Below, one piece after another: positions 41,201 to 64,000 of a stretch of DNA of 64,000 bases (positions are counted from its first letter, which is position 1; each line of letters opens with the position of its first letter). The position numbers and the translations under genes were made by a program. The notes under the pieces were generated by a model that saw only the letters and a program-made list of their open reading frames with translations, ran no database searches and was not told where the DNA came from. Source of the DNA: Dimorphilus gyrociliatus (taxonomy: Eukaryota; Animalia; Annelida); the NCBI GenBank assembly GCA_904063045.1, contig CAJFCJ010000015.1:1309034-1373033 (forward strand), given 5' to 3'.

Positions 41201-44200
41201 CTATAAAGATAGAATATCAGGAAGACATCCACAACATTGCTCTAAATTAAAAAGAAAAACAGAAAGCGATGAGAGTGGTTATGCGGAAAGTCCAACAGTT
41301 GATCAAACATTGTTAGATGATGCTCGACCAGTTACTGTACAAATAGAATGCGATGAGATTGATAATATTCTTCAAGATACTAATAATATTGATGGGGATG
41401 ATTATTTTAATTCGTCAATTGAGACTATAAAAAAGCAAACAATCGAGTTTATTAAGAAAACGAAAACTCACACAAAAAGGATACAAAAGGATGATTCTAT
41501 CTATACAGATCTTTCATTTCAATCATCCAAGCAGGGTAGTAAAATATTTGGGAAAAGTAAATCATTTGATACTTGGGATTCCCATTCTTTCCAACATGCA
41601 GATACTGAAAAGGTTACTGAAAACTATTCACGCACGCAATACGACCATCTACACACTATTCCTAGTATAAGTGTTCAAAATAACCCTTATGATTTTATAT
41701 CGAGAAACTCTTGCAATGTTGGTGTAGAAACAACTGAAGATGAAAGAATCCCAAAAAATTCTTCGACTCAAACCATCAATGAAAGCCAAGAAGCCAATAG
41801 TTCTTGCGAACAAGCCCCAACAAGTCATTATGATTTTCATGAAAGAAAAAATACGAAAAAGAAAGATCAAATAAAAGATATACCCAAAAAAGGGACTAAA
41901 AATCAAGATCCCAATAGAAAAAATCTTATGAGGCTTATGCTTTCACAAGTCAGAGATTTAAAATCTCAACTTCAACCATATATCGCCCAGAGTGAAGAAC
42001 ACACATCCCGTTTATCTACCTCAAAAACTAAAAGAAAAGTAAGGACAAGAAATCCCACGGCTCAGCGAAGAAATATTTCATTGTCACCAGTAAATAGAGA
42101 TCGCAAGAGAAGGCTACCTAACTTGCCAGAAAATGTGTTAAGTCCAAGACGTTTACCTGCTGCTCCTTTTGATCATCCCCAAAGTACTTTTAAACCAATT
42201 CGTTTGCCTCCTCAACAATTTCAACCGATGCCACCAACGTGCATCATTGTTGCAAGTCCAGCAAGAGAGGAATGCGACGATATTTGCAATAGTTTATCTA
42301 GCTCTAGTTTTTCGTGTTCTTCCTTTTAGATTTTTAGCTATTAATTTATGTATGCGATTTTTCCTGGTTTGAATTTAAATAACTCTGTATTATTTATGGA
42401 ATAAATGAATTAACATGTCTAATTTTTTATTTAATTGAATCCTAGTCACGTGGCAATTATGATCGAGATGTCCAATACTTAAATATTAATTTCCTTGTTT
42501 TTTTCAGAGAACATTTCAGTATTTATCCGAACAAGAAGCAAGTATAGATATATTAAAAGATCTAGCTGGAGTAATTAAGAATCAAGTTAGTTCTCATGAT
42601 GGCATTTTGGTAGACGAAAGAGTATCAGATTTAGATAGAAAAGCAGTGGATTGCAAAGCTAAAATTGAAAAGAACTTGAACAATTATCAGAAAATTGTTG
42701 TTGAATATGATAGTGTTACAAAGAAACTGGAGGCTTTGTGTGCTTGGCTAAATGTTACTGAAGCAACCGTTGAGTCTATGGAACCTATGGGAAGTTCTCC
42801 AAATGATGTTCAACTAGTTCTTGATGCTCTGGAAGCTTTAGAAAACGAAATTATTGAGAAAAAACAAGAGGTCATTCAAGCTGGAGAATCTCCTATTCTA
42901 TTAGAATTAGGGTCTGCCGAGAGAACAATGATACAACAGCGTTTAGACAATCAGATCACCCAGCATTCTAATTTAATGATGAGCGTGGCAGATAAGAAAC
43001 GACAGTTACTAAATGCTCTTACTTACCTCAAAGGATTTCAAATAGAAATGAAATCTTTTGAGGATTGGTTGGTCAATTCAAGAAATTTGCTGTTTAAAGC
43101 CAAAAATCCTCAATCAGTTACTGAACAGGCTAATCTAATGAAAACTATTCTAGATGATATAAAAGATCATAAAATTCTAATCGAAAAATTACAGAGAGAC
43201 ACTGCTACTATAGCATCACTCTGTTCTGTAGAAAAGCGAGAAGATTTATTGAATCGCCTGCAGCAGATGAATGATCAGTATGATGAACTTAAGTGTTTAG
43301 CTGAAGAGAGTACTCTAGAAAACAAAAAATCTCTAAACAGCCTAAAGTCTATTTCTGGAGATGTTGAAACTGTTCATAAATGGTTAGAAGAAACAAGCTC
43401 TAATTTAAAACCCCTAGTAATAGAAAACATTAACGTAGGCTCTCTTGAATCTGATAAACAATATCATGATAATCTCCTTCGTACGGCTGATGAAATGATG
43501 ACGGCTCTAGATTCTATCAGAGACAGAGCTTCCGAAATTAATGGTTCTCAAAGATTCGAGATTCTTGAAAGCATTGGAAACGAATATGAGAATGTTGAAT
43601 ATCTAAAATCCACCTTAGAGCAGAGAAAAGCAGATATTGAACGGGCTTTGCATACTCACTCTCAAACAGAAGGCAAAATTACAGAAGTGCAACAAATTTT
43701 AATTGGCAAATTAAATGAGCTAACAAAACTTTCAAAAGCTCCCATAGGGCCCAGTCAAGAAAGTGCTCGTCGACTTCTTATTCAAGCAGAGAGACTGGAA
43801 AGGGAATTAAGAGATTATAAACCTCAAGTTGAGGAGACAGTTAGTTCTTTATCGGAATTTTCGAAGGGAGGACACCAACGAACAGAACAGGAAATGACAA
43901 AACTTGTTAAACTCAGTAGCGATGTAGAAAATGCTTGCGAACAGCTTCTGTCGAAATTTAAAAGTGCGGCAGCTCTACGAAGGACATATGCCGAACATAG
44001 AGGAGAGATTGAAACAGTTATCGATCAAATGTATCAACAAATTGAGGCTGTAGAATATGAAGGTGTTCCTGTTCACACAAAATTAGATCGATATGAAGCT
44101 GTCCTTGAAACAATAGCCGCAAAAGATCCACAATTAGGAATATTACAAGATCGAGGAGAGCAAATTAAAGCTGATGGAACAGTAGCTGATAAGGATGTAA

Positions 44201-47200
44201 TATCGTCTCAAATGGAGACCTTGCAAAAGAAAATGTCTGACTTGAAAAGTAATGCCGAGGAGAGGGGTAGATCTGTCCGATTTGTTATATCAGAAAGAGA
44301 AGAGAGAGATCAGGCTCTAACCAATGATATATCTTGGCTGGAGGACAAGTTAAAACGTTTACAAAAACAAACACCATTACCAATTGATTTGGCAGAGGCA
44401 ATTGCAGACAGAGAAATATTTGAAAAACGCGTCTCTGAAATAGAATATCGATTAGAAGATGTTGTAATAAAAGGGCAAACTCAAAAGAATCATTTTGAAA
44501 ACCTTAATGAAATGGTTCCTTTAGACATTCGTGATAAATTAGAAGAAATTGAAACCATTCAGAGAGAACTGACAGATAGTGTCGCTGAAAAAAGAAAATA
44601 TTTAGACAATGCATGTCTGTTACGAAAATCATTTGAGGAAATGTTTTCAAATATAAGGGATTGGGTTAGACAATCTGAAGCTATTGTTAGATCAACAAAC
44701 AGCACTTTAGAAATGGTAAGACCTGTGATTGGAAATCAAATTGTTAAAGAAGCTGAGATAAAGTCATTAGAAGAGGTTGCTAATCAACTGACTAGGTCAT
44801 TGGACCTCAACGATTCTCAAACTATTAATGAAATGGTAGAGGGTATGCGTGACAGAATCAAATCTGCTGTTGAAAGTGCAAAGGAAAAAGAAAGACAACT
44901 CGAGACTGAGAATAAATCTAATAAGACTTTCTCAGAACTACTAAACCAAGTAAAATCAACAAATAAAGATTGTGAAGATAAATTGAAAAAGTGTTCAACT
45001 CTCCATTCCCCATCGAGTGCAGAGCATGCTAAAAATCTGGCTTTGGAATGGCAAGAAGCAGTTGACTTTATAACTCAGTATTCGCCCCTGGTAGAACGGT
45101 TAAAGTCCTCCGCAGCTGAACTACGGTCACATTTAAGCGAAAATGAGCTTCAAGATTATTTATCAGCTATTAAAACTTGGAATGCAATTCTTAATCAAGT
45201 TGGAGAGGGTAAAGATGCAGCAGATCAGTTGGCAAGCGAATGGAAAGATTGGAACAGCGATACAGACGAAATAACTACTTCACTCAAAGATATTGATTCT
45301 CTTTTAACTACAGATATTCAAAATATAGACATGAATGAATTAACTGAACAGTTTTATAAGATAAAACAGGCAGAGAGAAATATTATTAGCATGGAGCCGA
45401 AAATACGAGATTTAAAAGTGAATGCTCAATCCTTGATAGGAAAATTCTCAGATAATAATGACTCCCAAGACATATTACAAAATAAACTGATGACTGTTTT
45501 GGCTTCTTACGAGGAAAATAAGGAAAACGTTAAAGAAAATTTGAATACACTGGAAGCTGCACTGGCGGAGAGAGACAATGTGAAAAAAGCATTGTATACG
45601 ATTAAGCAATCACTAGACACCATTCAATTGAAATTGCATCAACTATCGATATCAAGAGGTTTGAAGCCAAAAGATAAACTAGAACGACAGCAAACTTTGG
45701 AAAGTGAAATGAAAGAAAAGATGAAAAATTACCATGCTGCAGTAGACAGGACCAATATTCCCATGGAACTTGTAGAAGAAGCTAAGTCAATAGAAGAAAA
45801 ATACCTAGAAGTTTGTAAAGCTATTGAAAACACTCAAAACGATTTAAAAGATGTTCAAACTATTCAAAGTGAATTTGAAACACGATTTCAAAATGTGAAA
45901 CTATGGTTAGAGAATGCCAGTAAAACCTTATCACAGCCACCATCTGATGTGTTGAAATCAGTCGATGATGTTGATGAATTAATGTCAGAATTCCCTAAAT
46001 TTGAAATTGAGTTTGAAGAATTAAACGCAAAAGCTAATATTTTACTGAAGAGTGCTTCTCCACTCGCGAAGTTACCCTTAGAGAGGTCGATGGCAGATAT
46101 TAGTGACAAGTGGAAAGTCATAAAGTCAGCAGCTGAGAAGCAGCTAAAGGAAGCAAAGGAAACGAAAGATGCATATGAAACATCAGAAAATCTAGCAAAT
46201 GAGTTTGAAATATGGCTCGCGAATGTCGAAAGTTCAACAACGCCTTTTGAAGATTGGAAAAACTCAAACGAACTACAAAATAAGTCAGCTCAAGTAAAAA
46301 GAGCAATAGTAGAAGTCAGTAATCGCTCAGAAGATATAAACAAACTTCAACTTGCTCTTGAGCGGCTGCAAAGACAACCCCAATCGTTGGATGTTATAGA
46401 AAGGCTCCAGAATATTGACAAGAAATACTCTGTCTTACAAACTACTCTCCCTGAAAAATTGTCAGCTATGGAATCATGGAAGGACTGTCAGAAAGATTTA
46501 ACAAGTGTTACGAGTGCGTTTAACGATTTACAAAAAACAATGTCAAATTCTGTTTTAGAAGAAGCTCCTGCTGTTGAAAAACTTAAAGTGAAGCAACATC
46601 AATTGATAGAAGTAAATAAGCAGCTAGATGCACTTGCTATAGCACAAAGAAAAGAAAGAGATGCGAGAAGCAAAATGAGGTGTGATAATCCATCTCCGTT
46701 ATGTGGGCCACTCATAGCAGAACTAAAGGAACTGAAGGATCAACTTAACAATGATTGCCGATCCTTAAGAACACAAAGTACAAAAGAAACGGCTAAAGTG
46801 AGAGAGATTGATGATTTGAAAACGAAACTTGCTCAAGCAGAAGCAACCCTTCGAAAGAAAACTTCTGGTGGAGAGAAAGTGCCAAAATCTCTTGATGACA
46901 TTCGCAAAGAAATTGCTGAAACTCAAGTAAGTGTTTCATACTTTATCTCCCATTTGCTTACTCTACTGTTTGGTGTTTTTTTCTCGTGTGGCATGAAGCT
47001 TTCCATATCTTACTGTCTTCTAACTATTTTCGACGGCTTCACAAAGCACCTTATCTGTTGTCTTTGCACACTCTTATCTGCACGATATAACATTTTCTGT
47101 ACAGGAACTAACACGCCAAGTGAAGGCTCTAAAAGATCGTATTTCCACTGTTAGTAATAGAATGTTGTATTTGCCCTATGGTACTAGTGCAAATTCTACC

Positions 47201-50200
47201 CCTAGAGATACCCCATATTACATGAGTAGTGAACCTTCATCTCGCAGTAGTACTCCTAGTTTGACATCTCTTGATAAGGGCAAACTTGACTATAATCATT
47301 TATTCCCTATTAAGCCTTCATATGACTTTCATGTAATCAAAGACAACCCATTATCCCTTTCTGGTACGGTGTTTGAATTAACAGAGGAAATTAATAAATC
47401 ATTTGAAAATCAAATTTCCGAACCGATTATAACTATGAGCAAACTGGATGACCCTTCTTCAATAGAAAAAGTAAATAGTGCTAAAGATATTATTTTCGAC
47501 TCTTCTGATTTGCTACCAGCAAATAATGAATTTCTGATTATAGTGGAAACTTCTAATTCAATTGATAAAGTTATTTTTGAGCAAAACGATTCAAAGTGCT
47601 CTGAAATAATTCTCGACAATAAATATCAGGGAAAAAGTGATGTTAAAGGTAACAAATTACAAAAGGAGGATAAAAATACTGAAGGTCCCAGAGAACAGCA
47701 AAACACTCAAAACTCCATAAATAACGGATATAACTTAAAATGTACTCACTCTGTATCAACAACTCATGAACATTCTTTCTCTAAGGAGGAAAGTTTACAA
47801 CCGAAACACAAATTTAGTGAAGACTCAACTGATTCCGACGATTATGAAAGCTTCTCTTCAGATTCAATATATTTTAGTCCCAACAGAAGTAGAAGAAGTA
47901 CTTTAGAGGAATTAACTTTTAGTATTAATGACAATATTACTAAAAATTCACCATCTGGAGATGAAAATATAATGTATAAAGTTCAGAATAATTCATTAAT
48001 CTTATCTTCACCACTCGATTTGTCCGAGGACATTAGTTTCCTGCCGGAAGTAGAATTTAATAAAGCAAAAGAAGAAAACATCCCCGAAATAAGATGGACT
48101 AAAGCAGTAATGAGCTTTCCAATATATGATGCCGATGATGAGTATGAAGAGAGTAGTCGTTCGTCTAGTCAAAACACTCATCTCAGTAGTAAAAGCAGCC
48201 CAGAGCTGGCTGTTTCTGAAAAATGTTCGGATTTAGCAACAGAAGAATACAAAATTGATGATGTTGAAATTTTAAATGAAAATAGTTGCGATGAAAGCAA
48301 CGACGCAAGCGGCACAACAAATACTATAAATAAAATAATAGATTTAGAAGTATTTGAATCGCCTGTTCTAACTGATACTGGTTACTTTAGCGAAAAATCT
48401 TTAAATGAATATAATGAAAAAACTACATCAAGTTTAGTAGGTGGCACAGAAATATTAAATGAAATAACAATTGAAAAAATCCTAGAATCAACCAAACTCA
48501 ATACTACAAATGAAAAGGACGAACTAACAATGTATCCAATTCAAACTGTAGTAGCAAATAGTGAACCCAATGAAAATGAACTTGCAAATGCGAGACAAAT
48601 AATTACGGATATTAATATTGAGACAGACCTTGAATCATTAACATTTCAATTAGCTGAAAAGCAATCTAAACCACTGCCTAACATTGAACTATCAGTACAC
48701 AGTAGAGCCTATCTTGAATATCCACCCAAAGAAGATGGCTTGTTTCATAAACCGGATAAAGACAGTTTATATAAGGAGTTAGAATTGTTGCAAAAAGAAC
48801 TTATAAATCGACCACAATGCATAATTGAAGTAGAAATTGAAGAAAGTTTAGAATCGAAAGTAACAAATCCAGTAGAAGATGAAAATGCTTCCAGTAGACA
48901 ACTCTTTATTCCAGTATCAAGTATGCATATAGAACTAGACAAGGATCCGCTAAAAGCTGATTCTTCTCATGAATACCAATCAATTAAATGGAATACCAAA
49001 AATGACTCTAAAGAAAATATACTCCCGGAAGACCAAAATTATACTCTGGACAATCCAAGTCTAACTGATACAATAGAATTGTTTCGAAAACAAAACTTGA
49101 CTGATATTCAGGTAGCAGCTGCACTAACAATGGAAACATTTTTAGAATCAACAATGTTCAGTTTACATGAAGGTAAAAAAAATCCAGTGAAAGAATGCCC
49201 CATTGATATATTGACCTCTAAAGGTAATTCTGAAGAAAGTGCTTCAAGCGTCATGGTATGCTATACGCCTGATGACAAAAACTATGGCAATGAAATTGAA
49301 TTGATGCAAGCACTACCTAAATCACATATAGCAAATGAGCTGAGTATTGTATCAAATCTACAATCAACAGTATTTAAGACATTAGATAACAACGTAACTT
49401 TAAAAAAAGAACACACGCCATCAGATGAGTCGTATTTTGAACTTGATAACAAGAGTTATTTGAAACAGATGGAACCAATAAGAGAAAAGGACCTAACTGA
49501 TAAATATATATCGACCGAATTAATGATAGAAACAAATTTAGAATCAACAGTATTCCATTCAATGGAATATGAGAACAACTTACTAAAGGAAGCCGCCACT
49601 AGAAAAGGTGGAAAATATGACTTAGAGTATGTCTCAACCGATGAATGTTGTGTACCAACATTTGGTATAATAAAACCAACTGATGAAATTGCATTGATAC
49701 GTGGATATCATCAATTATTCAATACACATTTGACTACTGAAGTTACTGTTGTAATACATCTAGAATCAACAATGTTTAAAGCAGAGAGTAGAGACCATAC
49801 TAGAACTCAGAATTTCGCTAAGGAATTTTCGTCTATCGAAAGTGCCCTGGAAGAAAGTATATCAAGAGACGAATTGTACTTTACACAAGATAAAGACAGC
49901 TTCTCTGGTGACAGAGAACTAATACAAATCACCCATGAAACATCTGTTTTGTCAGAGCTTGCTGTTGAAACACATTTAGAACCAACATCATTTAATACAA
50001 TAGATATTTACAATGATAGTGCAACAAAATATCTGAAAAAAGCAGCTTTGACTGACGAAGGAAATTTTGAGAAAGACAAATCTAATGAATGCAACACAAC
50101 TAAAATTAAATTTGAACAAACTCAAAAGTTATCAAAAGCCAGCATAAAGGAATTAAAATTGTTACAAAAAGAACTTTCAAATCGACCACAATGCATAATT

Positions 50201-53200
50201 GAAGTAAACATTGCAGAAAGTTTAGAATCGAGAGTAACAAATCCAGTAGAAGATGAAAATGCTTCCAGTAGACAACTCTTTATTCCAGCATCATGTATGC
50301 ACATAGAACTAGAAAAGGAAGAGTTAACTGACGAGTCGTTTTTTACACCGGATAGTCAAAGTATAATTAATGCAATAGAATTATTGCAGAGGTACCTATC
50401 TGAAACTTGTACAATAACCAAAGTCTTAATCGAATCATACCTGGAGTCAACAAGTTTTAATCAAATGGACAATTTCAATAATCTATCACAAGAAGACTTG
50501 ACACACATTAAAAGTGAAGGTGAAGGCGGGAACTTATATCTAACACCTGATAAAGAAAGTATAGCGGGAGAATTGGCAGTATTACAAAAACAAGAGTTGA
50601 ATGAAGCAAGTACAATAAATGATTTAATAATTGAAACACATCTAGAATCAAGAACTATTAATTCAGTTGATAACGGGCATGCCAGTTCAGAATTGACAGA
50701 ATTTCATGTAAATGATAATTGTGATACTACAAAAAGTGAAGTGTTCCTTACTCAAGACGATATAAAGTTGGTTGAAGAAATCGAATTGCTTAAAAACGAA
50801 TTCTCATCTGGAAATAAAATAATTAATGAGTTAACATTAAAAGTTAATTTAGAAACAACTACATTTCCTTTACTGGAAACTGAAAGTAATACACGAAAAA
50901 ACTTCCTTCCTATTTCATTGACTGAAGACACTGATAGCGAAAAAGCTACTTCAGAGAATATATACCTCTCCTTTGAGTCGAAAAAACACGGCTCCGCTGA
51001 AGATTTATCATGGATTGAAGGTGACTTAGAAAGAGAAGAAAATATTGACCATGTTGAATATTTAATCCAAACTAGGCATGGAAGCATATCACAAACTGGA
51101 GATAACAAGACACAGATATATTGTAATCCCAACCCTAATTTTTTTAATTTTGAGCTAGCTATGCTGGAATGTTTGAATAAGAAAGATGTAATTGTAAAAG
51201 CTACAATAGAAACACATTTGGAATCTATGAGATTTGTATTATCTGACGAAGAAGTAGAAATGTTAAAGGAACGAATTCGAACTGTAACGAATAATAGTCA
51301 AATGACACGCATTGAAAAGCCGTCAAAGCAGGTAATAAAAATAATTTATTAGTATGACTTCAATAAAGTTTCCATTTTTTTCAGGAAAGTAAGGAACTTT
51401 TCGTACCAGTTTACTTCGTTTCAGAAATAAATTTGGAGTCAACCAAGTTTGAGGAAGTTAGAACAAATTCTCCTATCACAGCAGAAATACTTTGTAAGAA
51501 AAGTTTTCAGTCCCCTGATATTCACTCTGAAGATCATGAGTTTTCGAAACGATATCCAACCAGCATATTTTCTCCAAAAAAGAAAATAATTTTCAATGAA
51601 AAAATGCAGCTCTTTCCTGAATTGGGAAAAAAACAAGAAGTATTACGAATTGCCACAGAAACATACCTTCAATCAACAAAATTTAAGGATTCACAGAAAA
51701 ATTTAGAAGATACAATATCTTCAAGCTCTACAAAGGAAACGAAACAAGCATCACACAACAAAAATACAGAGAAGGAGATATCAAGAGAAACAAGCTTAGA
51801 ATCTACAAAGTTGAATCCCAGTGAAGAACATACATCTATGGAGAGTTTTAATAATAACCGTAAAGAGGATAATGAATTTTTTATGCCAGAGAGTACGATC
51901 ACTAATTTTAGACACGAAAAACTTAGAGCAGTAGAAATTACTACTATTCTTGAATCAGTATGTATAACTGCCCCTAAAAATGATGGTGACAGTGACATTA
52001 CGCCAAGGAACATAGATGAAAATATATCTCAATCTCCAACTAAAATCAGTCAAAATTTAAATACATTTACATCATCATATATTGTAAATATCGAAGACGT
52101 TTTAAAAGAGACTGAAAGGAATAACGTCATTTTCTTAATCCAAACAAAAACCAATCTTGAATCTAAACATTTGGCAGTTAATATTAATATGCACGAGGAG
52201 CATTTCTCACAAAATTTATACTTCATTCAAGAAGGTGCTACACCGAAACGAGAAAATGAGATATATCTCAAATCTAAAATATCGAATATAAGCAGCAAAG
52301 AAGAAATCATTGAAAGCATTAAGCCAGTTGGATACTTACTGCAGTTATCTTTAATTGTAACCCTTGAGCCAACAAGCTTCACGATCCATGATATTGCCAA
52401 TACCTCTTTTAAACAAAAACAAGATAAAGTTCCAGAATATGAATCATCAAAAAGTGACGATTTCGAGAAAAGCGAAGTCTTTTTCACGCCATCAATGTCG
52501 AACATAAAGAGCGAATTGGAATTTATTGAAAGTCAAACAAAAACCAAAAGTCTAATAGAAATAAACCAATTTTCCAATCTTGAACCAACATGTTTTAAGA
52601 TCAATAACATTGAATATGACTACTGCAAAAACATTCACAAAGATGTTGAAAAAGATGCCAAACAATTTTCGCCGAAAACAACAAACCTACATAACGAAAT
52701 TCAGTGTTTTCAAAGCGAGCCACAATCGAGAAACTTGATACAAATCTCAGCAATTACCAATCTTCAGTCAACTCATTTCCAGACGCACACCTCAAAACAC
52801 ACAAACGATGATCATCAAAAGTACAAGTCAACAGAACTCAAAGATTCCAATAAAATTAAAACATTTCCTTCAAATCCAGACATCCATTGCAAACATAACG
52901 ATTACATCAACGAAATAACGCACGTTACTCATCTTGAATCAAAAAATTTCAAGAAAAGTGAATATCATGATATCTCATTTGTTAAGAAAGGCTATGATGT
53001 TCTGGAAGATGAAACAACAGAAACAAAAAATTGTGAAGAAAGTGAAAGGTTCTTTATACCTCGATCATCAAGTGTATTAGACGAACTTGAATGTTTCGAA
53101 AGCGTGTCAAAAACGAGTAACTTAATCGCAGTATCGAATGCCACTAATCTCGAATCTATATATTTCAAGAGTAGTGATTTCGAAAGTGAAATCTCTGAAA

Positions 53201-56200
53201 CACCAAAAGATAAGGTTATAGAAAATGAATCAAAAGATACCGAAAGTCACACAGACGAGGAAACTTTCCTTACCCCAAAATCATCAAGTGAAATTAGCGA
53301 ATTACAATTCTATCAAAGCGACATAACAAATGAAATCGTCAGAGAAATAACGCACGTTACTCAACTTGAATCAACACATTTCAAGAAAAATGATATTGAT
53401 GATATCTCATTCGTTAAGAAAAGTAATGACGTTCCGGAAGCTGAAACAACAGAAACAAAAGATTGTGATGAAAGTGAAAGGTTCTTTACACCTCGATCAT
53501 CAAGTGTATTAGACGAACTTGAATGTTTCGAAATCGAGTCAAACACGTGTATCTTAATCGAAGCTTCAAATGCCACTAATCTCGAATCGACATATTTCAA
53601 AAAGGGTGACTTCGAGAGTGAAATCTCTGAAACAGCAAAAGATGAGGTTATAGAAAATGAATCAAAAGATACCGAAGGTCACACAGACGAGGAAACTTTC
53701 CTTACCCCAAAATCATCGAGTAGAATTAGCGAAATACAATTCTATCAAAGCGAGATAACAAATAAAAACGTCACAGAAATAACGCACGTTACTCATCTTG
53801 AATCAACACATTTCATGAAAAATGACATTGATGATATCTCATTCGTTAAGAAAAGTAATGATGTTCCGGTAGCAGAAACAACACAAACAAAAGACTGTGA
53901 AGAAAGTGAAAGGTTCTTTACACCTCGATCATCAAGTGTATTAGACGACGTTGAATATTTCGAAAGCGTGTCAAAAACGAGTAACTTAATCGCAATATCG
54001 AATGCCACTAATCTCGAATCGACAAATTTCAAAAAGGGTGACTTCGAGAGTGTAATCTCTGAAACACCAAAAGATGAGGTTATAGAAAATGATTCAAAAG
54101 ATACCGAAAGTCACACAGACAAGGAAACTTTCCTTACCCCAAAATCATCAAGTGAAATTTGTGAATTACAATTCTATCAAAGCGAGATAACAAATAAAAA
54201 CGTCACAGAAATAACGCACACGACTCAACTGGAATCAACACATTTCATGAAAAATGACATTGATGATATCTCATTCGTTAAGAAGAGCAATGATGTTCCA
54301 GAAGCAGAAACAACACAAACAAAAGACTGTGAAGAAAGTGAAAGGTTCTTTACACCTCGATCATCAAGTTCATTAGACGAATTTGAATGTTTCGAAAACG
54401 TGTCAAAAACGAGTACCTTAATCGAAGCATCGAATACTACCAATTTCGAATCGAAACACTTCAAGAAAAGTGATCACGAGAGTGAAATTTGTGAAATGTC
54501 AAAACATCAGGTTCAAGAAAATCAATCGAAAGAATCTGAAAATTACACAGAAAATGAAGCTTTCATTACCCCAAAATTATCAAGCGCAATAAGCGAATTA
54601 CAATTCTATCAAAGCGAGATAACAAATGAAATCGTCAAAGAAATAATGCACACTACTCAACTTGAATCAACATATTTCAAGAAAAATGACATTGATGACA
54701 TCTCATTCTCTAGTCAAGACAATTATGTTTTGAAAGCTGAAACCACAAATACAAAACATTCAGATGAAAAGGAAGCATTTCTATCTCCTCGAGCATCAAG
54801 TCATTTTGAGAGTGAAAGCTCCAAAACACCAAAAAATGAGCTTCAAGAAAAGGAATCGAAACAAAGCGAAGGTTACACAGAAGATGAAACATTCCTCACC
54901 TCAAAATCATCAACTGAAATTAGCGAATTACAATTCTTTAAAAGCGAGATAATAACTCAAAACGTCACAGAAATAACGCACACGACTCAACTGGAATCAA
55001 CACATTTCATGAAAAATGACATTGATGATATCTCATTCGTTAAGAAGAGCAATGATGTTCCAGAAGCAGAAACAACACAAACAAAAGACTGTGAAGAAAG
55101 TGAAAGGTTCTTTACACCTCGATCATCAAGTTCATTAGACGAATTTGAATGTTTCGAAAACGTGTCAAAAACGAGTACCTTAATCGAAGCATCGAATACT
55201 ACCAATTTCGAATCGAAACACTTCAAGAAAAGTGATCACGAGAGTGAAATTTGTGAAATGTCAAAACATCAGGTTCAAGAAAATCAATCGAAAGAATCTG
55301 AAAATTACACAGAAAATGAAGCTTTCATTACCCCAAAATTATCAAGCGCAATAAGCGAATTACAATTCTATCAAAGCGACATAACAAATGAAATCGTCAG
55401 AGAAATAACGCACGTTACTCAACTTGAATCAACACATTTCAAGAAAAATGATATTGATGATATCTCATTCGTTAAGAAAAGTAATGACGTTCCGGAAGCT
55501 GAAACAACAGAAACAAAAGATTGTGATGAAAGTGAAAGGTTCTTTACACCTCGATCATCAAGTGTATTAGACGAACTTGAATGTTTCGAAATCGAGTCAA
55601 ACACATGTATCTTAATCGAAGCTTCGAATGTCACTAATCTCGAATCGACATATTTCAAAAAGGGTGACTTCGAGACTGAAATTGTTGAAACATCAAAAGA
55701 TGAGGTTATAGAAAATGATTCAAAAGATAATGAAGGTCACCGAGAAGAGGAAACTTTCCTTACCCCAAAATCATCAAGTGAAATTTGTGAATTACAATTC
55801 TATCAAAGCCAGAAAACAACTGAAAACGTCACAGAAATAACCCATACAACTCAACTGGAATCAACACATTTCAGGAAAATTGACATTGATGATATATCAT
55901 TTGTTAATAAAAGTAATGATGTTCTGGCAGCTGAAACAATAGAAACAAAAGATTGTGAAGAGGTTGAAAGTTTCTTTACATCTGGATCATCAAATGTATT
56001 AGACGACGTTGAATATTTTGAAAGCGACTCAAACACGTGTATCTTAATCGAAGCTTCGAATGCCACTAATCTCGAATCGACAAATTTCAAGAAGGGTGAC
56101 TTCGAGAGTATAATCTCTGAAACACCAAAAGATGAGGTTATAGAAAATGAATCAAAAGATACCGAAAGTCACACAGACGAGGAAACTTTCCTTACCCCAA

Positions 56201-59200
56201 AATCATCAAGTGAAATTAGCGAATTACAATTCTATCAAAGCGACATAACAAATGAAATCGTCAGAGAAATAACGCACGTTACTCAACTTGAATCAACACA
56301 TTTCAAGAAAAATGATATTGATGATATCTCATTCGTTACGAAAAGTAATGACGTTCCGGAAGCTGAAACAACAGAAACAAAAGATTGTGATGAAAGTGAA
56401 AGGTTCTTTACACCTCGATCATCAAGTGTATTAGACGACGTTGAATATTTTGAAAGCGACTCAAACACGTGTATCTTAATCGAAGCTTCGAATGCCACTA
56501 ATCTCGAATCGACAAATTTAAAAAAGGGTGACTTAGAGAGTGTAATCTCTGAAACACCAAAAGATGAGGTTATAGAAAACGAATCAAAAGCTACCGAGGG
56601 AATAGAAAGGGAAGATAAGGAAGAGACCAAAGATTCCTTTGTACCTAGAACATCAAATATCAGTGAAGAAATAAAAAAAGACTTAAGCAAAATAAAACAT
56701 GAAAACGTAACGGAACTTATACTTTCAACGAATCTTGAGTCACCATCCTTCATAATTTGTGAAATTGAGAAGAACAATGTTTATAAAGAGATGTTCAATG
56801 ACAAAGAAGAAAAGAAAGAAAACCAGAATTTCCCTTCACTTACAGTGTTCAATGATGAATTAGAATGCAAACAATACTTGGAAGATAGCGAAAATCTTCT
56901 TCAAATTATGATTACTACGCAAATGGAGTCCACAGTTTTTGAAGCAGAAGATAATATAAACCACATAGAAGAGCAACGACACGATATTCCTTTAGATGAG
57001 AAAAGTATTTCTGAAGACGATGAAATCTGCAAAGATTCGTCATATATTACTCCAGAGAATGATTCTTTCAATGATGAATTAGAATGCAAGGAATACTTGG
57101 AAGACGGGGAAAGTCTTCTTCAAATTATAGTCACTACGCAAATGGAGTCCACAGTTTTTAATACGGGAGATAGTAAAACCCACATTGAAGAGCAACAACA
57201 AGATATTCCTTCAGAGGACAAAAGAATTCCAGAAGACGATGAAATCGCCAAAGATTCGTCATATATTAATCCACAAAAAGATTCTTTCAATGATGATTTA
57301 GAATGCAAGGAATTCTTGGAAGATGGCGAAAGTCTGCTTCAAATTATGGTCACTACGAAAATGGAGCCCACAGTTTTTAATACGGGAGATAGTAAAAGCC
57401 ACATTGAAGAGCAACAACAAGATATTCCTTCAGATGAAAAAAGCATTCATAAAGACGATGAAATCGCCAAAGATTCGTCATATATTACTCCACAAAAAGA
57501 TTCTTTCAATGATGATTTAGAATGCAAGGAATTCTTGGAAGATGGCGAAAGTCTACTTCAAATTATGGTCGCTACGCAAATGGAGTCCACGGTTTTTGAA
57601 GCAGAAGATAATATAAACCACATTGCAGAACAACAACACGATATTCCTTTAGATGAGAAAAGCATTCATAAAGACGATGAAATCGCCAATGAAGCGTCAT
57701 ATATTACTCCAGATAAAGATTCTTTAAATGATGAATTTGAATGGAAGGAATACTTGGAAGATGGCGAAAGTCCTCTTCAAATTATGGTCACTACGCAAAT
57801 GGAGTCCACAGTTTTTGAAGCAGAAGATAATATAAACCACATTGCAGAACAACAACACGATATTCCTTTAGATGAGAAAAGCATTCATAAAGACGATGAA
57901 ATCGCCAATGAAGCGTCATATATTACTCCAGATAAAGATTCTTTAAATGATGAATTTGAATGGAAGGAATACTTGGAAGATGGCGAAAGTCCTCTTCAAA
58001 TTATGGTCACTACGCAAATGGAGTCCACAGTTTTTGAAGCAGAAGACAATAAAAACCACTTTGAAGAACAACAACACGTTATTCCTTTAGATAAAAAAAG
58101 CATTCATAAAGACGATGAAATCGCCAATGAAGCGTCATATATTACTCCAGATAAAGATTCTTTCAATGATGAATTAGAATGTAAGGAATACTTGGAAGAT
58201 GGCGAAAGTCTTCTCCAAATGATAGTCGTTACGCAACTGGAGTCCACAGTTTTTGAAGCAGAAGATAGTAAAAACCACATTGCCGAACAACAGCACGATA
58301 TTCCTTTAGATGAGAAAAGCATTCATAAAGACGATGAAATCGCCAATGAAGCGTCATATATTACTCCAGATAAAGATTCTTTGAATGATGAGTTAGAATG
58401 TAAGGAATACTTGGCAGATGGCGAAAATCTTCTTCAAATGATGGTCGTTACGCAACTGGAGTCCACAGTTTTTGAAGCAGAAGATAGTAAAAACCACATT
58501 GCCGAACAACAGCACGATATTCCTTTAGATGAGAAAAGCATTCATAAAGACGATGAAATCGCCAATGAAGCGTCATATATTTCTCCAGATAAAGATTCTT
58601 TAAATGATGAATTAGAATGCAAGGAATACTTGGATGACGGCGAAAGTCTTCTTCAAATTATGGTCACTACGCAAATGGAGTCCACAGTTTTTGAAGCAGA
58701 AGATAATATAAACCACATTGCAGAACAACAACACGATATTCCTTTAGATGAAAAAAGCATTCATAAAGACGATGAAATCGCCAATGAAGCGTCATATATT
58801 ACTCCAGATAAAGATTCTTTGAATGATGAGTTAGAATGTAAGGAATACTTGGCAGATGGCGAAAATCTTCTTCAAATGATGGTCGTTACGCAACTGGAGT
58901 CCACAGTTTTTGAAGCAGAAGATAGTAAAAACCACATTGCCGAACAACAGCACGATATTCCTTTAGATGAAAAAAGCATTCATAAAGACGATGATTTCAC
59001 GAAAGATTCATCATATATTACTCCACAAAAAGATTCTTTCAATGATGATTTAGAATGCAAGGAATACTTGGAAGACGGCGAAAGTCTTCTTCAAATTATG
59101 GTCACTACGCAAATGGAGTCCACAGTTTTTGAAGCAGAAGATAATATAAACCACATTGCAGAACAACATCACGATATTCCTTTAGATGAAAAAAGCATTC

Positions 59201-62200
59201 ATAAAGACGATGAAATCGCCAATGAAGCGTCATATGTTACTCCAGATAAAGATTCTTTGAATGATGAATTAGAATGTAAGGAATACTTGGCAGATGGCGA
59301 TAATCTTCTTCAAATGATAGTCGTTACGCAACTGGAGTCCACAGTTTTTGAAGCAGAAGATAATATAAACCACATTGAAGAACAACGACACGATATTCCT
59401 TTAGATGAGAAAAGCATTCATAAAGACGGTGAAATCGCCAATGAAGCGTCATATATTTCTCCAGATAAAGATTCTTTAAATGATGAATTTGAATGGAAGG
59501 AATACTTGGAAGATGGCGAAAGTCCTCTTCAAATTATGGTCACTACGCAAATGGAGTCCACAGTTTTTGAAGCAGAAGACAATAAAAACCACTTTGAAGA
59601 ACAACAACACGATATTCCTTTAGATAAAAAAAGCATTCATAAAGACGATGAAATCGCCAATGAAGCGTCATATATTACTCCAGATAAAGATTCTTTCAAT
59701 GATGAATTAGAATGTAAGGAATACTTGGAAGATGGCGAAAGTCTTCTTCAAATGATAGTCGTTACGCAACTGGAGTCCACAGTTTTTGAAGCAGAAGATA
59801 GTAAAAACCACATTGCCGAACAACAGCACGATATTCCTTTAGATGAAAAAAGCATTCATAAAGACGATGATTTCACGAAAGATTCATCATATATTACGCC
59901 ACAAAAAGATTCTTTCAATGATGATTTAGAATGCAAGGAATACTTGGAAGACGGCGAAAGTCTTCTTCAAATTATGGTCACTACGCAAATGGAGTCCACA
60001 GTTTTTGAAGCAGAAGATAATATAAACCACATTGCAGAACAACAACACGATATTCCTTTAGATGAGAAAAGCATTCATAAAGACGATGAAATCGCCAATG
60101 AAGCGTCATATATTTCTCCAGATAAAGATTCTTTAAATGATGAATTAGAATGCAAGGAATACTTGGATGACGGCGAAAGTCTTCTTCAAATTATGGTCAC
60201 TACGCAAATGGAGTCCACAGTTTTTGAAGCAGAAGATAATATAAACCACATTGCAGAACAACAACACGATATTCCTTTAGATGAGAAAAGCATTCATAAA
60301 GACGATGAAATCGCCAATGAAGCGTCATATATTACTCCAGATAAAGATTCTTTCAATGATGAATTAGAATGTAAGGAATACTTGGAAGATGGCGAAAGTC
60401 TTCTTCAAATGATAGTCGTTACGCAACTGGAGTCCACAGTTTTTGAAGCAGAAGATAGTAAAAACCACATTGCCGAACAACAGCACGATATTCCTTTAGA
60501 TGAAAAAAGCATTCATAAAGACGATGATTTCACGAAAGATTCATCATATATTACTCCACAAAAAGATTCTTTCAATGATGATTTAGAATGCAAGGAATAC
60601 TTGGAAGACGGCGAAAGTCTTCTTCAAATTATGGTCACTACGCAAATGGAGTCCACAGTTTTTGAAGCAGAAGATAATATAAACCACATTGCAGAACAAC
60701 ATCACGATATTCCTTTAGATGAAAAAAGCATTCATAAAGACGATGAAATCGCCAATGAAGCGTCATATGTTACTCCAGATAAAGATTCTTTGAATGATGA
60801 ATTAGAATGTAAGGAATACTTGGCAGATGGCGATAATCTTCTTCAAATGATAGTCGTTACGCAACTGGAGTCCACAGTTTTTGAAGCAGAAGATAATATA
60901 AACCACATTGAAGAACAACGACACGATATTCCTTTAGATGAGAAAAGCATTCATAAAGACGGTGAAATCGCCAATGAAGCGTCATATATTTCTCCAGATA
61001 AAGATTCTTTAAATGATGAATTTGAATGGAAGGAATACTTGGAAGATGGCGAAAGTCCTCTTCAAATTATGGTCACTACGCAAATGGAGTCCACAGTTTT
61101 TGAAGCAGAAGACAATAAAAACCACTTTGAAGAACAACAACACGATATTCCTTTAGATAAAAAAAGCATTCATAAAGACGATGAAATCGCCAATGAAGCG
61201 TCATATATTACTCCAGATAAAGATTCTTTCAATGATGAATTAGAATGTAAGGAATACTTGGAAGATGGCGAAAGTCTTCTTCAAATGATAGTCGTTACGC
61301 AACTGGAGTCCACAGTTTTTGAAGCAGAAGATAGTAAAAACCACATTGCCGAACAACAGCACGATATTCCTTTAGATGAAAAAAGCATTCATAAAGACGA
61401 TGATTTCACGAAAGATTCATCATATATTACGCCACAAAAAGATTCTTTCAATGATGATTTAGAATGCAAGGAATACTTGGAAGACGGCGAAAGTCTTCTT
61501 CAAATTATGGTCACTACGCAAATGGAGTCCACAGTTTTTGAAGCAGAAGATAATATAAACCACATTGCAGAACAACAACACGATATTCCTTTAGATGAGA
61601 AAAGCATTCATAAAGACGATGAAATCGCCAATGAAGCGTCATATATTTCTCCAGATAAAGATTCTTTAAATGATGAATTAGAATGCAAGGAATACTTGGA
61701 TGACGGCGAAAGTCTTCTTCAAATTATGGTCACTACGCAAATGGAGTCCACAGTTTTTGAAGCAGAAGATAATATAAACCACATTGCAGAACAACAACAC
61801 GATATTCCTTTAGATGAGAAAAGCATTCATAAAGACGATGAAATCGCCAATGAAGCGTCATATATTACTCCAGATAAAGATTCTTTCAATGATGAATTAG
61901 AATGTAAGGAATACTTGGAAGATGGCGAAAGTCTTCTTCAAATGATAGTCGTTACGCAACTGGAGTCCACAGTTTTTGAAGCAGAAGATAGTAAAAACCA
62001 CATTGCCGAACAACAGCACGATATTCCTTTAGATGAAAAAAGCATTCATAAAGACGATGATTTCACGAAAGATTCATCATATATTACGCCACAAAAAGAT
62101 TCTTTCAATGATGATTTAGAATGCAAGGAATACTTGGAAGACGGCGAAAGTCTTCTTCAAATTATGGTCACTACGCAAATGGAGTCCACAGTTTTTGAAG

Positions 62201-63912
62201 CAGAAGATAATATAAACCACATTGCAGAACAACAACACGATATTCCTGTAAATGAAAAAAGTAGAATAAAAGAATACTTGGAAGATGGCGAAAGTCTTCT
62301 TCAAATTGTTTTATCCACGCAATTAGAAACCACCTGTTTTCATGAGGAAAAGAATGTTGAACATAACATTCCAAGAAGCAAAATGGAAAATGATGTAGAA
62401 AAAATTCATAGTGTTTTCGAGGAAAATAGAGAGAATTTTGTAGGAGCGATATATTTAGAGTTTTTTAGTGAAACACCTAATATTGAAGTGAAAAAATGTT
62501 TTTTAAGCTCTCCAGTAATCTCAACGATTTCGGATTTATCGCTTTATAAAGCAAGTATTTTGCCGTCTTCTCCTTTCGTTTCTGAATGCGCTGAATTTAC
62601 AACTGGATGCGATAATTTCTTCTGTCTACAAGATACATCAATGAATTTAGAAAGTCAACTGAATTTTTATGACTCTTCCTGCATTGTTAGAGAGAATGAC
62701 TTTGACGAATCTTATGCTAGTGATTCAATTAATGAGCCGGAACAGACGTTTTCAGAATTTTATGATCGAATTTCTCAGGCAAGAGGTTTTTTTGGCGTAT
62801 ATTTTCGAAGAAAAAACATTTCTAAGGGACCTTCATATGAAATTACTGAAATAATGGAAGACGCAAAGGAATATAATGTAAACAACGAGTCAGAATCATC
62901 TTCAGTGGATTCAGAAGGACCTGATATTGAATCAAAAGGTGCAGACAGTTCAAAAGTTGAGGGGGATGTAAATGAACAAAATATGAAATTCGGAGATCTT
63001 CAAGAAAATATGCTTGAAAAAACCAAAAAACCTACTTTTGATATTGAACATGCTAGTGCTCAAATCAATAAAGAGAACAATCTGTCTAACATTAGTCAAA
63101 CAAAAGTTGAAAGAAGCTCCACAAATTTATCTTCTGAGAACCAGGAATCAGGACTAGTCGAATTGAACGAGAACGAATATGACGAAACTAAGCTTGAATC
63201 TGCCTTCAAGCCATTTAACACAGCACATTTCATCCCTAGTGTACTGTATTCGAAACTACTAGAAATTAAATGTTTAGCTGATAAATTTTCGCAAGGCGCA
63301 AATAGTCAAGAAACAGATTGTACTGAACTTTGTGCTAACAGAGAAAAGTTATTTGCGCCGGAAAATGATATTTCTGAAAATGCACGCAAGATTGAGAAAG
63401 ATAATTCGAAAAAGCTTAATGTTTCCACTAAAAGTCATGAAGAAAATAAACTTTCTGAATCTGGCCAAAAAATTAAAGAAGTAACGGAAATTCATAGTTT
63501 CTCTCCAATATTCACAGACAAAGAAACTGAAATTAATCTATATAAAAGTGTCGAATCAAGTATTGATATTGAAAATTTAATCTATAATAGTACTATTAAC
63601 AATTCTGATAAATTAAGTACTATCAGGTCACAGGACACACAATCTTATCAGATAGATAGCTCTGATGTATCACCCATAGAAATATCTGTACATTCAACTG
63701 AAAATGCGAGATCCTCTGGAACTGATCCTACTTTCTATGAGCAAAAAGAGAACATCAGAGACTTTCTACAGCAATCAAATGCCTTAAAAGTAACAAAAGA
63801 GTGCCCTAAAAGCATAGTCACAGCTGAAATATCTAATTTCGCATTGGATCAAAGTGAAACTGATATGGAAGTAGAAGAAATTATGGGTGAAGTAGGAAAT
63901 AAGAACGAGAAG
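14292..63912 (+). CDS. SYNE1: Giant nesprin-1 / MSP-300-like protein (CH-CH + spectrin repeats + giant acidic repeat insert), probably continues beyond the window
   Basis: CH1 EQERVQKKTFTNWVN...GRRMQRIHYVTNV...PAIVLGLIWTVILYFQIEE and CH2 DFGPSWRDGHAFNAMIH...LLDPEDVDVDRPDEKSIMTYVAQF, plus nesprin-1-like EFLSNLPQWKDKHEKLNEAANFLIET. Phase-consistent exon chain: 14292-14454, 17726-18060, 18111-18319, 19619-19919, 20491-20628, 21068-21916, 22336-23913, 24144-26069, 26125-29676, 30085-32655, 32717-33685, 33912-35940, 35992-36230, 36278-36409, 36484-36648, 36717-38450, 38626-39615, 39678-40457, 42508-46926, 47105-51331, 51385-63912. These sum to 39,834 nt (13,278 codons). No KASH domain (TM + PPPX) in the window. 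Confidence 0.9.
16313..16385 (+). CDS. Alternative first coding exon of the nesprin gene (MVDIVCKYGKYYRSLGRLHVDYDP)
   Basis: ATG with an upstream in-frame stop, 24 codons + G, then a perfect GTAAGT donor in phase 1. Joining to 17726 gives D-EQERVQKKTF, the canonical CH1 entry. Confidence 0.65.
19111..19549 (+). CDS. Intronic alternative terminal exon (or nested ORF from ATG 19103), basic/Ser-rich
   Basis: 150-codon same-strand ORF inside nesprin intron 18320-19618. The first AG after a pyrimidine tract (19109-19110) is in phase with the phase-2 donor at 18320. Stop at 19549, AATAAA at 19594-19599. Confidence 0.6.
21983..22018 (+). CDS. Candidate 36-nt in-frame cassette microexon (IEYKKFLRKWSI)
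   Basis: CTTTAG acceptor and GTAAGT donor, phase 0-0, inside a phase-0 intron. Confidence 0.4.
29805..29945 (+). CDS. Spectrin-repeat exon (VLEREIHDRSKKVEGLK...RLQQLVQIR), probably alternative
   Basis: TAG acceptor in phase 0, a helix-B-like sequence continuing KKERVLELK, and a GTTGGT donor (the same donor sequence is used at 26070). Confidence 0.65.
40583..40850 (+). other. Two short phase-0 exons with GTAAG donors: 40583-40612 (YDCMSVFINR) and 40818-40850 (MKNGAHRLSLT), candidate internal first exons or microexon
   Basis: CAG|TAT...CGG|GTAAGA and ATG AAG...ACG|GTAAGT. Both are in phase with the acceptors at 41145 and 42508. Confidence 0.45.
41145..42329 (+). CDS. Intronic alternative terminal exon of the nesprin gene (~394 aa disordered tail)
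   Basis: 399-codon same-strand ORF in intron 40458-42507 with a T9-ACAG acceptor in phase 0 (matching donor 40458). Stop at 42329, AATAAA at 42400-42405. Confidence 0.75.
   Translation, partial: LSSNNTRPLRRILPNVNNAYKDRISGRHPQHCSKLKRKTESDESGYAESPTVDQTLLDDARPVTVQIECDEIDNILQDTNNIDGDDYFNSSIETIKKQTIEFIKKTKTHTKRIQKDDSIYTDLSFQSSKQGSKIFGKSKSFDTWDSHSFQHADTEKVTENYSRTQYDHLHTIPSISVQNNPYDFISRNSCNVGVETTEDERIPKNSSTQTINESQEANSSCEQAPTSHYDFHERKNTKKKDQIKDIPKKGTKNQDPNRKNLMRLMLSQVRDLKSQLQPYIAQSEEHTSRLSTSKTKRKVRTRNPTAQRRNISLSPVNRDRKRRLPNLPENVLSPRRLPAAPFDHPQSTFKPIRLPPQQFQPMPPTCIIVASPAREECDDICNSLSSSSFSCSSF
47105..51331 (+). CDS. Giant exon A (4,227 nt, 1,409 codons), acidic, non-spectrin, with degenerate xTxLESTxF modules
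   Basis: CTGTACAG acceptor in phase 0, continuous ORF, CAG|GTAATA donor. Confidence 0.8.
48773..50312 (+). repeat. Dispersed 166-bp in-frame duplication (48773-48938 and 50147-50312)
   Basis: Both copies encode KELxLLQKELxNRPQCIIEVxIxESLESxVTNPVEDENASSRQLFIPxSxMHIEL, offset 1,374 bp. Confidence 0.9.
51385..63912 (+). CDS. Giant exon B (12,528 nt, 4,176 codons) containing two coding tandem arrays
   Basis: T7-CAG acceptor in phase 0 and an uninterrupted ORF. A likely donor AAG|GTAGAA lies at 63913. Otherwise the frame stops at 63919-63921. Confidence 0.8.
52912..56600 (+). repeat. Coding tandem array, 432-bp (144-aa) dimeric unit, about 8.5 copies
   Basis: Unit starts (EIT/EIM) at 52912, 53344, 53776, 54208, 54640, 54970, 55402, 55834, 56266. 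The 54640 unit is 330 bp (102-bp in-frame deletion). Confidence 0.93.
56848..62340 (+). repeat. Coding tandem array, 219-bp (73-aa) unit, 24 full copies plus a truncated 25th
   Basis: Consensus FNDELECKEYLEDGESLLQIMVTTQMESTVFEAEDNINHIAEQQHDIPLDEKSIHKDDEIANEASYITPDKDS. Unit starts are 56848 + 219n, checked at several n up to 62104. Confidence 0.96.
59038..62103 (+). repeat. Higher-order repeat: 7 x 219 bp = 1,533 bp block present twice
   Basis: The variant order A-B-C-D-E-F-G at 59038-60570 repeats at 60571-62103. Confidence 0.9.
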
Positions 63913-64000
63913 GTAGAATAAATGAAGGAAACTGATTAGCTATAAATAATTTATTGATTTACCATAAAGCAAAGATTTATTGTTTTCTTTGATAGGTTTT

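Follow-up and report, generated by a model that had tools for sequence, protein, structure and literature searches.

A gene of the nesprin-1/MSP-300 type runs along the + strand of the 64,000-nucleotide (nt) stretch of the Dimorphilus gyrociliatus contig CAJFCJ010000015.1 analysed here (the window; all positions refer to it), and two of its exons are of giant size. A PacBio assembly of ~78 Mb represents the genome of this annelid, in which the median intron measures 66 bp and spliced leaders are absent (PMC7854359); a search for the nematode SL1 leader gave no matches. All searches were run exon by exon, each exon being taken separately. Upstream of the giant exons, a CH domain (PF00307, E 1.4e-19) was found at 19605-19970. 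The open reading frame (ORF) preceding this exon, 19097-19549, had no Pfam match, so one CH domain of the pair is confirmed. A Spectrin_SYNE1 match (PF25034, E 1.6e-21) follows at 21182-21982, and long spectrin-type exons continue up to 46926, with a further Spectrin match (PF00435, 3.4e-19) in 42607-46926. The gene goes on in the next 40 kb of the contig, downstream of the window (L002, where L002:24 corresponds to 64024 in window-continuous numbering). There, on the same strand, lie a coiled-coil-like ORF without a Pfam match (L002:186-1274), a 1,215-amino acid (aa) exon that matches nesprin-spectrin weakly, a 980-aa exon with a strong Spectrin match (PF00435, 3.2e-49, L002:5509-8451) and a KASH exon (PF10541, L002:8888-9142, E 3.8e-8, 33.9 bits with the cut-off at 23), whose sequence contains a hydrophobic span and ends in ...WPNGQAPF and the stop. 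These spectrin repeats and the KASH exon are placed 1.5-9 kb past the giant exons, and the next gene encodes an unrelated tryptophan 2,3-dioxygenase. With spectrin repeats and a KASH exon following on that strand ahead of the next gene, the giant exons are internal to a canonical CH-spectrin-KASH gene and do not form its end. The CH domain, the spectrin rod and the C-terminal KASH domain that characterise genes of the nesprin-1/2, MSP-300 and ANC-1 type are each present.

The boundaries of the giant exons were assigned from the ORF listing, which gives + strand frames at 47120-51352 and 51433-63921, and by direct reading of the DNA. The upstream spectrin exon ends ...GAAACTCAA/GTAAGT (CAA/GTAAGT) at 46926/46927, and the acceptor of giant exon 1 is TGTACAG/GAA at 47104/47105. 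The donor of this exon, ...AAGCAG/GTAATA at 51331/51332, opens a 53-nt intron with an in-frame TAG, which closes with TTTTTCAG/GAA at 51384/51385. For giant exon 2, a possible donor AAG/GTAGAA is found at 63912/63913 and an alternative phase-0 donor, GAA/GTAGGA, at 63891/63892; the frame stops at a TAA (63919-63921) two codons past the former. An AATAAA hexamer beginning at 63917 is a possible alternative polyadenylation site, the use of which would give a KASH-less product ending ...NEKVE. The two exons measure 4,227 and 12,528 nt, that is 1,409 and 4,176 codons or 5,585 together, with no stops and with all junctions in phase 0. At this base composition stops would be expected at ~7-8% per codon by our own estimate, and therefore 1,409 open codons in the non-repetitive exon 1 exclude chance openness. 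The near-identical 219-nt array of exon 2, by comparison, is trivially open once a single unit is open. Taken with the gene context, the open frames and the splice signals read from the DNA show the pair to be real coding exons of the single nesprin-1/MSP-300-type gene. A frame-preserving exit from exon 2 leads from 63912 to a 66-nt exon (64024-64089) and on to an exon starting at 64264, again with all junctions in phase 0. The 66-nt exon is a candidate 22-codon phase-0 microexon (L002:24-89, LLYPNNSSLQELENSCSELESQ) with a good acceptor, TTTTTTTTTCAACAG, and the donor CAG/GTATAA; the next exon, a spectrin-like one at 64264 (L002:264), begins CLKTKFSNETYY...LAERDAELQKQ. The shared strand, the compatible phases and the conserved acceptor of exon 1 are indirect evidence that all these parts, including the giant exons, would be joined in one transcript.

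The product of the two exons is strongly acidic. Residue composition in both is dominated by E (12-14.5%), S (11%), D (6-9%), T (7-8%) and K (7.5%); over the whole insert E+D reach 22% and K+R 9%, giving an isoelectric point (pI) of 4.36, a net charge of about -737 and a mass of about 639 kDa. The net charge per residue is -0.13 for the insert as a whole and -0.21 in the 73-aa array. In Pfam searches with the giant exons cut into three pieces, Spectrin and Spectrin_SYNE1 were absent at E <= 0.1, and the flanking exons do match them; no genuine Pfam family was found in either giant exon. High scores to Mitofissin (1.3e-35) and CHU_C (1.6e-31), along with TDBD, were obtained in the second half of exon 2 (57385-63912) and were rejected as artefacts. 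These scores are sums over ~25 near-identical repeats that match a short piece of each model, and no single stretch passes. Such a repeat-summing artefact could spread through automatic annotation. The first-pass annotation of this DNA, made from the letters alone, had described two in-phase exons of 4,227 and 12,528 nt around a 53-nt intron, coding for ~5,585 acidic non-spectrin residues within a nesprin gene. The ORFs, the GT..AG boundaries, the phase, the charge and the Pfam result bear this description out, and the spectrin repeats and KASH domain for which it pointed downstream are both there, on the same strand and before the next gene, just as CH and spectrin stand upstream. The features of the exon pair are collected in Table 1.

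Table 1. Features of the giant exon pair and its surroundings, in window positions.
Feature	Position	Strand	Basis or remark
178-nt intron, GTAAGT...TACAG	46927-47104	+	conserved non-coding element
Giant exon 1, 4,227 nt, 1,409 codons, phase 0-0	47105-51331	+	ORF listing, boundary reading
Exon 1, part before the modules, ~aa 1-546, S/T/E-rich, fast-evolving, with conserved islands	47105-48742	+	comparison with the relative
Exon 1, module part, 9-10 diverged 72-aa modules	48743-51331	+	regular-expression and hidden Markov model (HMM) matches; genome-search matches from 49040 on
53-nt intron, GTAATA...TTTTTCAG, in-frame stop at 51350-51352	51332-51384	+	ORF listing, boundary reading
Giant exon 2, 12,528 nt, 4,176 codons, phase 0-0, putative 3' end, 48 modules	51385-63912	+	boundary reading, regular-expression and HMM matches
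Exon 2, diverged modules, aa 1-555	51385-53049	+	motif scan, module alignment
Arrays of 144-aa (two-module) repeats	53050-56847	+	Tandem Repeats Finder (TRF), alignment
73-aa (219-nt) array, 24.7 copies, 91% matches	56848-62261	+	TRF, layout in 73-aa rows
Exon 2, non-repeat acidic tail, aa 3661-4176	62365-63912	+	composition, motif scan
AATAAA overlapping the stop TAA 63919-63921; possible alternative 3' end	63917-63922	+	direct reading

Almost the whole repeat region is built from a single module of 72-73 aa, present in about 57 copies. TRF resolved four arrays, of 432-nt units (52912-54708, 4.2 copies, 89% matches), 330-nt units (1.9 copies), 432-nt units again (54808-56597, 4.1 copies) and the 219-nt units listed in Table 1; the 144-aa units proved to be pairs of two module subtypes. 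The motif scan counted 8 modules between aa 460 and 1250 of exon 1 and 48 between aa 17 and 3650 of exon 2, and a profile built from 19 diverse modules of mutual identity under 60% found 9-10 and 48 copies, respectively. Repeats are absent from the opening ~550 residues of exon 1 and from the closing ~516 of exon 2. The same profile detected no copies elsewhere in the window or in the next 10 kb, and in a genome-wide search all 53 module matches fell within 49040-62262 of the window. The module is thus unique to the nesprin locus within the D. gyrociliatus genome. Each module comprises an N-terminal [FY]-[FLY]-[TS]-P motif, a phi-x-phi-x3-T-x-LESTxF stretch and then about 30 variable, acidic residues. 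Among the 19 modules, positions 1-4 are [FY] in 81%, [FLY] in 86%, [TS] in 66% and P in 67%, and positions 12-14 are E in 71%, [ILM] in 88% and [EQ] in 77%. The second motif has [LIV] at position 28 (95%), [TS] at 32 (84%), L at 34 (95%), [EQ] at 35 (100%), S at 36 and T at 37 (74% each) and F at 39 (95%). The 5' copies are diverged, at about 20% identity, and the 3' copies are near-identical. Within the latter, a perfect 1,533-nt (7-unit) tandem duplication makes 59038-60570 equal to 60571-62103, that is units 10-16 equal to units 17-23, which reflects either a very recent event or an effect of the assembly. The strong repetitiveness of the insert goes beyond the first-pass annotation. With ~57 modules that carry two motifs, a multivalent scaffold is indicated no less than a passive spacer.

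AlphaFold2 gave no confident fold for the modules. A two-module unit was modelled with a predicted local distance difference test score (pLDDT) of 46.2, a predicted template modelling score (pTM) of 0.11 and no strands. Four 73-aa array units reached a pLDDT of 26.2 and a pTM of 0.14, with no residue above 50, and neither model contained a helical bundle. The simplest reading of these models is that the insert is an expanded, predicted disordered polyanion with short conserved motifs. By a standard polymer estimate, 5,585 residues would have a contour length of ~2 µm and, as a denatured-like coil, an end-to-end distance of the order of 80 nm. The first-pass annotation had proposed disorder prediction as a check on its view of the insert as an extensible spacer or entropic spring, probably tissue-specific. 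An acidic product lacking a confident fold fits a flexible spacer, and the view is supported to that extent; the insert may also act as an entropic spring and be tissue-specific.

Searches of protein collections returned no relatives of the insert. A word-based, length-filtered search with exon 1 (up to 8,000 candidates) found no homologue, an exhaustive search with the 19-module profile found 0 proteins at E <= 0.001 among 1.84e9 representatives, the same profile had 0 matches in PDB, and the ESM Atlas held no usable match for exon 1. On close kin these protein-database blanks are uninformative, ORFs cut by contig ends lying outside the collection and the records of D. gyrociliatus itself being possibly excluded. 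A comparison was possible with a distant relative, represented by a 33-kb Logan contig from run SRR23372228, which stops short of the first module. On this contig, the counterpart of the spectrin exon 42607-46926 is 67% identical. Four-fold degenerate sites are 32% identical between the two genomes, and chance identity from base composition is ~32% by our own calculation; silent sites are therefore saturated. The relative nevertheless keeps the donor, the 178-nt intron length and the acceptor at exon 1. The first 24 codons of exon 1, ELTRQVKALKDRISTVSNRMLYLP, are identical in the relative, and its frame is open for at least 515 codons, to the contig end. Past the exon start, amino acid identity to the relative's ORF falls to 37%, with 17% gap columns. 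Conserved islands stand out in this fast-evolving part, namely SEPSSRSSTPS, PIYDADDEYEESSRSSS (about 48116-48166) and TDTGYFSEKS (about 48365-48394), the latter two being candidate linear motifs. A conserved start and islands within a fast-evolving frame are the pattern of a real and probably disordered coding region. Runs SRR23372228, SRR23372229, SRR23372216 and SRR31984834 contain a second genome that is syntenic with the region (BTB - phosphatase - adenylate kinase-like - Trp dioxygenase, and the nesprin exons too), with protein identity of 67-84% and saturated silent sites. This second genome, which is useful for comparison, is probably that of another dinophilid-like annelid.

The 178-nt intron in front of exon 1 is strongly conserved. 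It is 80% identical to its counterpart in the relative (positions 14423-14600 of the sequence L013), shuffled controls giving 55 +/- 2.3% with a maximum of 61%, and its conservation exceeds that of the spectrin exons beside it (69-76%). It is also about 3 times longer than the genome median intron, and in D. gyrociliatus introns with open-chromatin peaks, or regulatory introns, are larger than others (PMC7854359). In a two-sequence consensus fold, which cannot show covariation, conserved blocks of the intron can pair around a poorly conserved loop (CGUGUGG/CUGCACG, UGAAGCU/GGCUUCA and CAAAGCA/UGUCUUUG). The intron had no Rfam match, its fold is not unusually stable (z = -0.87), and complementary 11-mers between it and the rest of the gene are no commoner than in shuffles. 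The intron may be a regulatory element for the giant exon, acting in splicing control or as an internal promoter or enhancer.

Taken together, the results make it likely that a pair of giant exons, coding and probably regulated, equips the nesprin rod with a flexible polyanionic segment in which two short conserved motifs recur ~57 times. According to this model, a long, flexible, self-repelling polyanion would be set in the spectrin rod between the actin-binding and KASH ends, where it would add reach and compliance, and the repeated motifs would offer many equivalent docking or phosphorylation sites. The array would have grown by repeated duplication of units and blocks, the oldest copies being 5' and the youngest 3'. 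Inclusion of the giant exons may be regulated, as the strongly conserved upstream intron and the phase-0 state of all junctions suggest, since with all junctions in phase 0 skipping keeps the frame.

Several observations weigh against this model. The splice junctions of the giant exons were read from DNA alone, and beyond 64264 many candidate junctions leave the splice chain ambiguous at this level. The GTAGAA donor at 63912 is not strong and an AATAAA lies on the stop two codons later, so exon 2 could be the last exon of part of the transcripts or of all of them. The copy number of the near-identical array depends on one PacBio assembly. Among the 219-nt array units, the ratio of nonsynonymous to synonymous substitution (dN/dS) is 0.67, which indicates that most of the unit is weakly constrained and that selection is concentrated on the core motifs. 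The AlphaFold2 models were run on shallow alignments of the gene's own modules, and weak, low-confidence beta strands appear on LLQIMVTTQ in the first three of the four modules (residues 26-30, 99-105 and 172-178) and would be compatible with a beta-rich assembly.

The closest competitor of the model is the use of the giant exons in special isoforms, as cassette or terminal exons and/or from an internal promoter, in the manner of Msp300-PE, -PG and -PM. The repeats would then belong to a CH-less, perhaps KASH-less protein with a specialised job, an explanation that overlaps with the preferred one and does not replace it. In Drosophila, exon 28 is common to the Msp300 isoforms E, G and M, which arise from an internal promoter and have no CH domains; other isoforms are made without this exon, which is needed for nuclear anchoring (PMC8616381); Msp300-PE also has no KASH domain and organises the perinuclear microtubule-organising centre (MTOC) of the fat body (PMC11230431). 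In the annelid, frame-neutral skipping, the AATAAA so close to the weak donor, and a long upstream intron that is highly conserved despite saturated silent sites, in a genome where regulatory introns are the larger ones (PMC7854359), all speak for such isoforms. However, exon 1 begins mid-helix, as a conserved continuation of the upstream coiled coil (ETQ/ELTRQVKALKDRIS), a reason to expect that some transcripts at least splice it to the exon before it, and AATAAA is not rare in a genome of 65% A+T. Special isoforms of this kind are a tentative explanation, one that we hold to be less likely than not.

The repeated motifs also allow the insert to be seen as a multivalent docking platform, in which the acidic tract followed by [FY]-phi-T-P would serve as a phospho-FFAT-like ligand of VAP or MOSPD2, ~50 copies of it tying the endoplasmic reticulum (ER) to the rod. 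By inspection, most modules show a pattern like that of the Phospho-FFAT motif, with its aromatic residue at position 2, its S/T at position 4 and its acidic flank. The motif is kept in diverged modules, as the frequencies at module positions 1-4 indicate, and acidic residues precede it, e.g., KDCEESER-FFTP and SHTDEET-FLTP. The Phospho-FFAT core has S/T at position 4, and in STARD3 positions 5 and 6 of the motif are prolines (PMC7705450). Genes for VAP and for a MOSPD2-like MSP domain with an intact R-F-L motif are, moreover, present in the genome, and ANC-1 localises to and anchors the ER (PMC8139857). Nevertheless, the resemblance was judged by eye, position 7 is rarely acidic, and the motif may just as well be a simple target of proline-directed kinases. 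A predicted complex of the MOSPD2-like MSP domain with a 36-aa module peptide scored 0.02, which is evidence neither way; the single-exon domain used (L010:1477-1809) is without its last strand, which the following exon encodes. We consider the FFAT-like proposal improbable. The MOSPD2-like gene itself (L010:1414-1812) consists of a CRAL-TRIO-like exon followed by the MSP-domain exon with the R-F-L motif, and the canonical VAP gene (L009) has its MSP domain divided among three or more exons.

Equally doubtful, in our estimation, is a structured rod in which the modules would fold together as a beta-rich ribbon or sandwich whose loops are acidic. In the conserved segment hydrophobic and polar residues alternate (LLQIMVTTQMESTVF), each of the first three modules has one weak strand in the four-module model, and AlphaFold 3 suggested a beta structure for the unrelated Msp300-PE repeats (PMC11230431). 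Against this stand the low scores of the four-module model, the strandless two-module model, and the fact that half of each module is variable and acidic. That the stretch lies outside the nesprin message altogether, as a separate gene or an unexpressed satellite-like array in a long intron, is very improbable: a tandem array of an open unit would stay open without selection, its units are near-neutral by dN/dS and the protein databases yielded no protein with the giant exons, but that absence carries no information for the reasons given above, ~9 kb of diverged, non-identical sequence (exon 1 and the start and tail of exon 2) is also open, the acceptor, the phase, the first 24 codons and a long open frame are kept in a silent-saturated relative, the core motifs persist among modules sharing only about 20% identity, and no separate start is evident in an exon that continues the upstream coiled coil.

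The insert can be compared with the repeat segments of two other invertebrate nesprins, of which the fly nesprin-1 orthologue Msp300 is the nearest precedent. Msp300-PE consists mostly of two novel tandem repeats, one of 108 aa in ~20 copies (Type 1) and one of 101 aa in 19 copies that form three clusters (Type 2); these repeats are negatively charged and confined to Drosophila, and AlphaFold 3 suggested beta sandwiches for them (PMC11230431). In both the fly and the annelid, a huge non-spectrin tandem-repeat stretch in a CH-spectrin-KASH nesprin gene gives a megadalton product, and both stretches share net negative charge, clusters of highly similar copies and a narrow lineage restriction. 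The likeness is one of architecture and acidity, acidic and lineage-restricted repeats of ~100 aa in a giant nesprin exon being the common element. However, the annelid unit measures 72-73 aa and its profile found nothing in 1.84e9 proteins, the fly repeats being compared by description, and no confident fold was obtained for the annelid modules, whereas beta sandwiches were suggested for the fly. Alternative use and an internal promoter are established for the fly exon, but for the annelid they are only hinted at by the conserved intron and the phase-0 junctions. ANC-1 of C. elegans contains six 903-aa tandem repeats of ~100% nucleotide identity, which are predicted to be helical; the protein anchors ER and nuclei, and the repeats contribute to this (PMC8139857). 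The nematode and annelid proteins are both nesprin orthologues with a recently homogenised tandem array in the central rod, but the 903-aa helical, spectrin-like repeats of ANC-1 replace the spectrin rod, whereas the annelid 72-aa acidic units are added to a normal one. Recent homogenisation is common to the annelid, fly and nematode repeats. Repeats of the ANC-1 type, with helical units of ~900 aa, are not what the annelid gene carries, its unit being 72-73 aa with no helical bundle predicted. The annelid insert is a lineage-specific tandem-repeat insert in an invertebrate nesprin and a member of neither the fly nor the ANC-1 repeat family. By analogy, it looks like an independent parallel to the Msp300 repeat exon.

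Outside the nesprins, similar solutions are known. In the giant ankyrins (480-kDa AnkG and 440-kDa AnkB), a single giant exon lengthens a cytoskeletal scaffold by thousands of residues that are extended or disordered, and its inclusion is tissue-specific. Short repeated motifs carry binding functions in such giant-exon inserts. These inserts are, however, vertebrate and neuron-specific, and their genes and sequences are unrelated to the annelid insert. The PEVK spring of titin, rich in P, E, V and K, is spread over many small exons and is likewise unrelated in sequence. A bolder combination of the above would see in the annelid array no passive spring but a multivalent, phospho-regulated tether for organelles or the ER, or else a scaffold that organises microtubules. 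The conserved intron would control inclusion, and nesprins would have grown homogenised repeats independently in at least three invertebrate phyla, those of the fly, the nematode and the annelid. We give this combination a slim chance.

Summarizing, nesprins position nuclei and other organelles, and those of the fly and the worm contain huge non-spectrin repeats, of which the fly ones were described only recently. The annelid insert offers a short module in which old and young copies stand side by side, so that constrained positions are easily read and concrete motifs result, and the 178-nt intron is a candidate regulator of giant-exon inclusion. As a third independent case, found in an annelid that evolves slowly and whose compact genome is well assembled, the insert indicates that such inserts recur in nesprins and can be built from quite different units.

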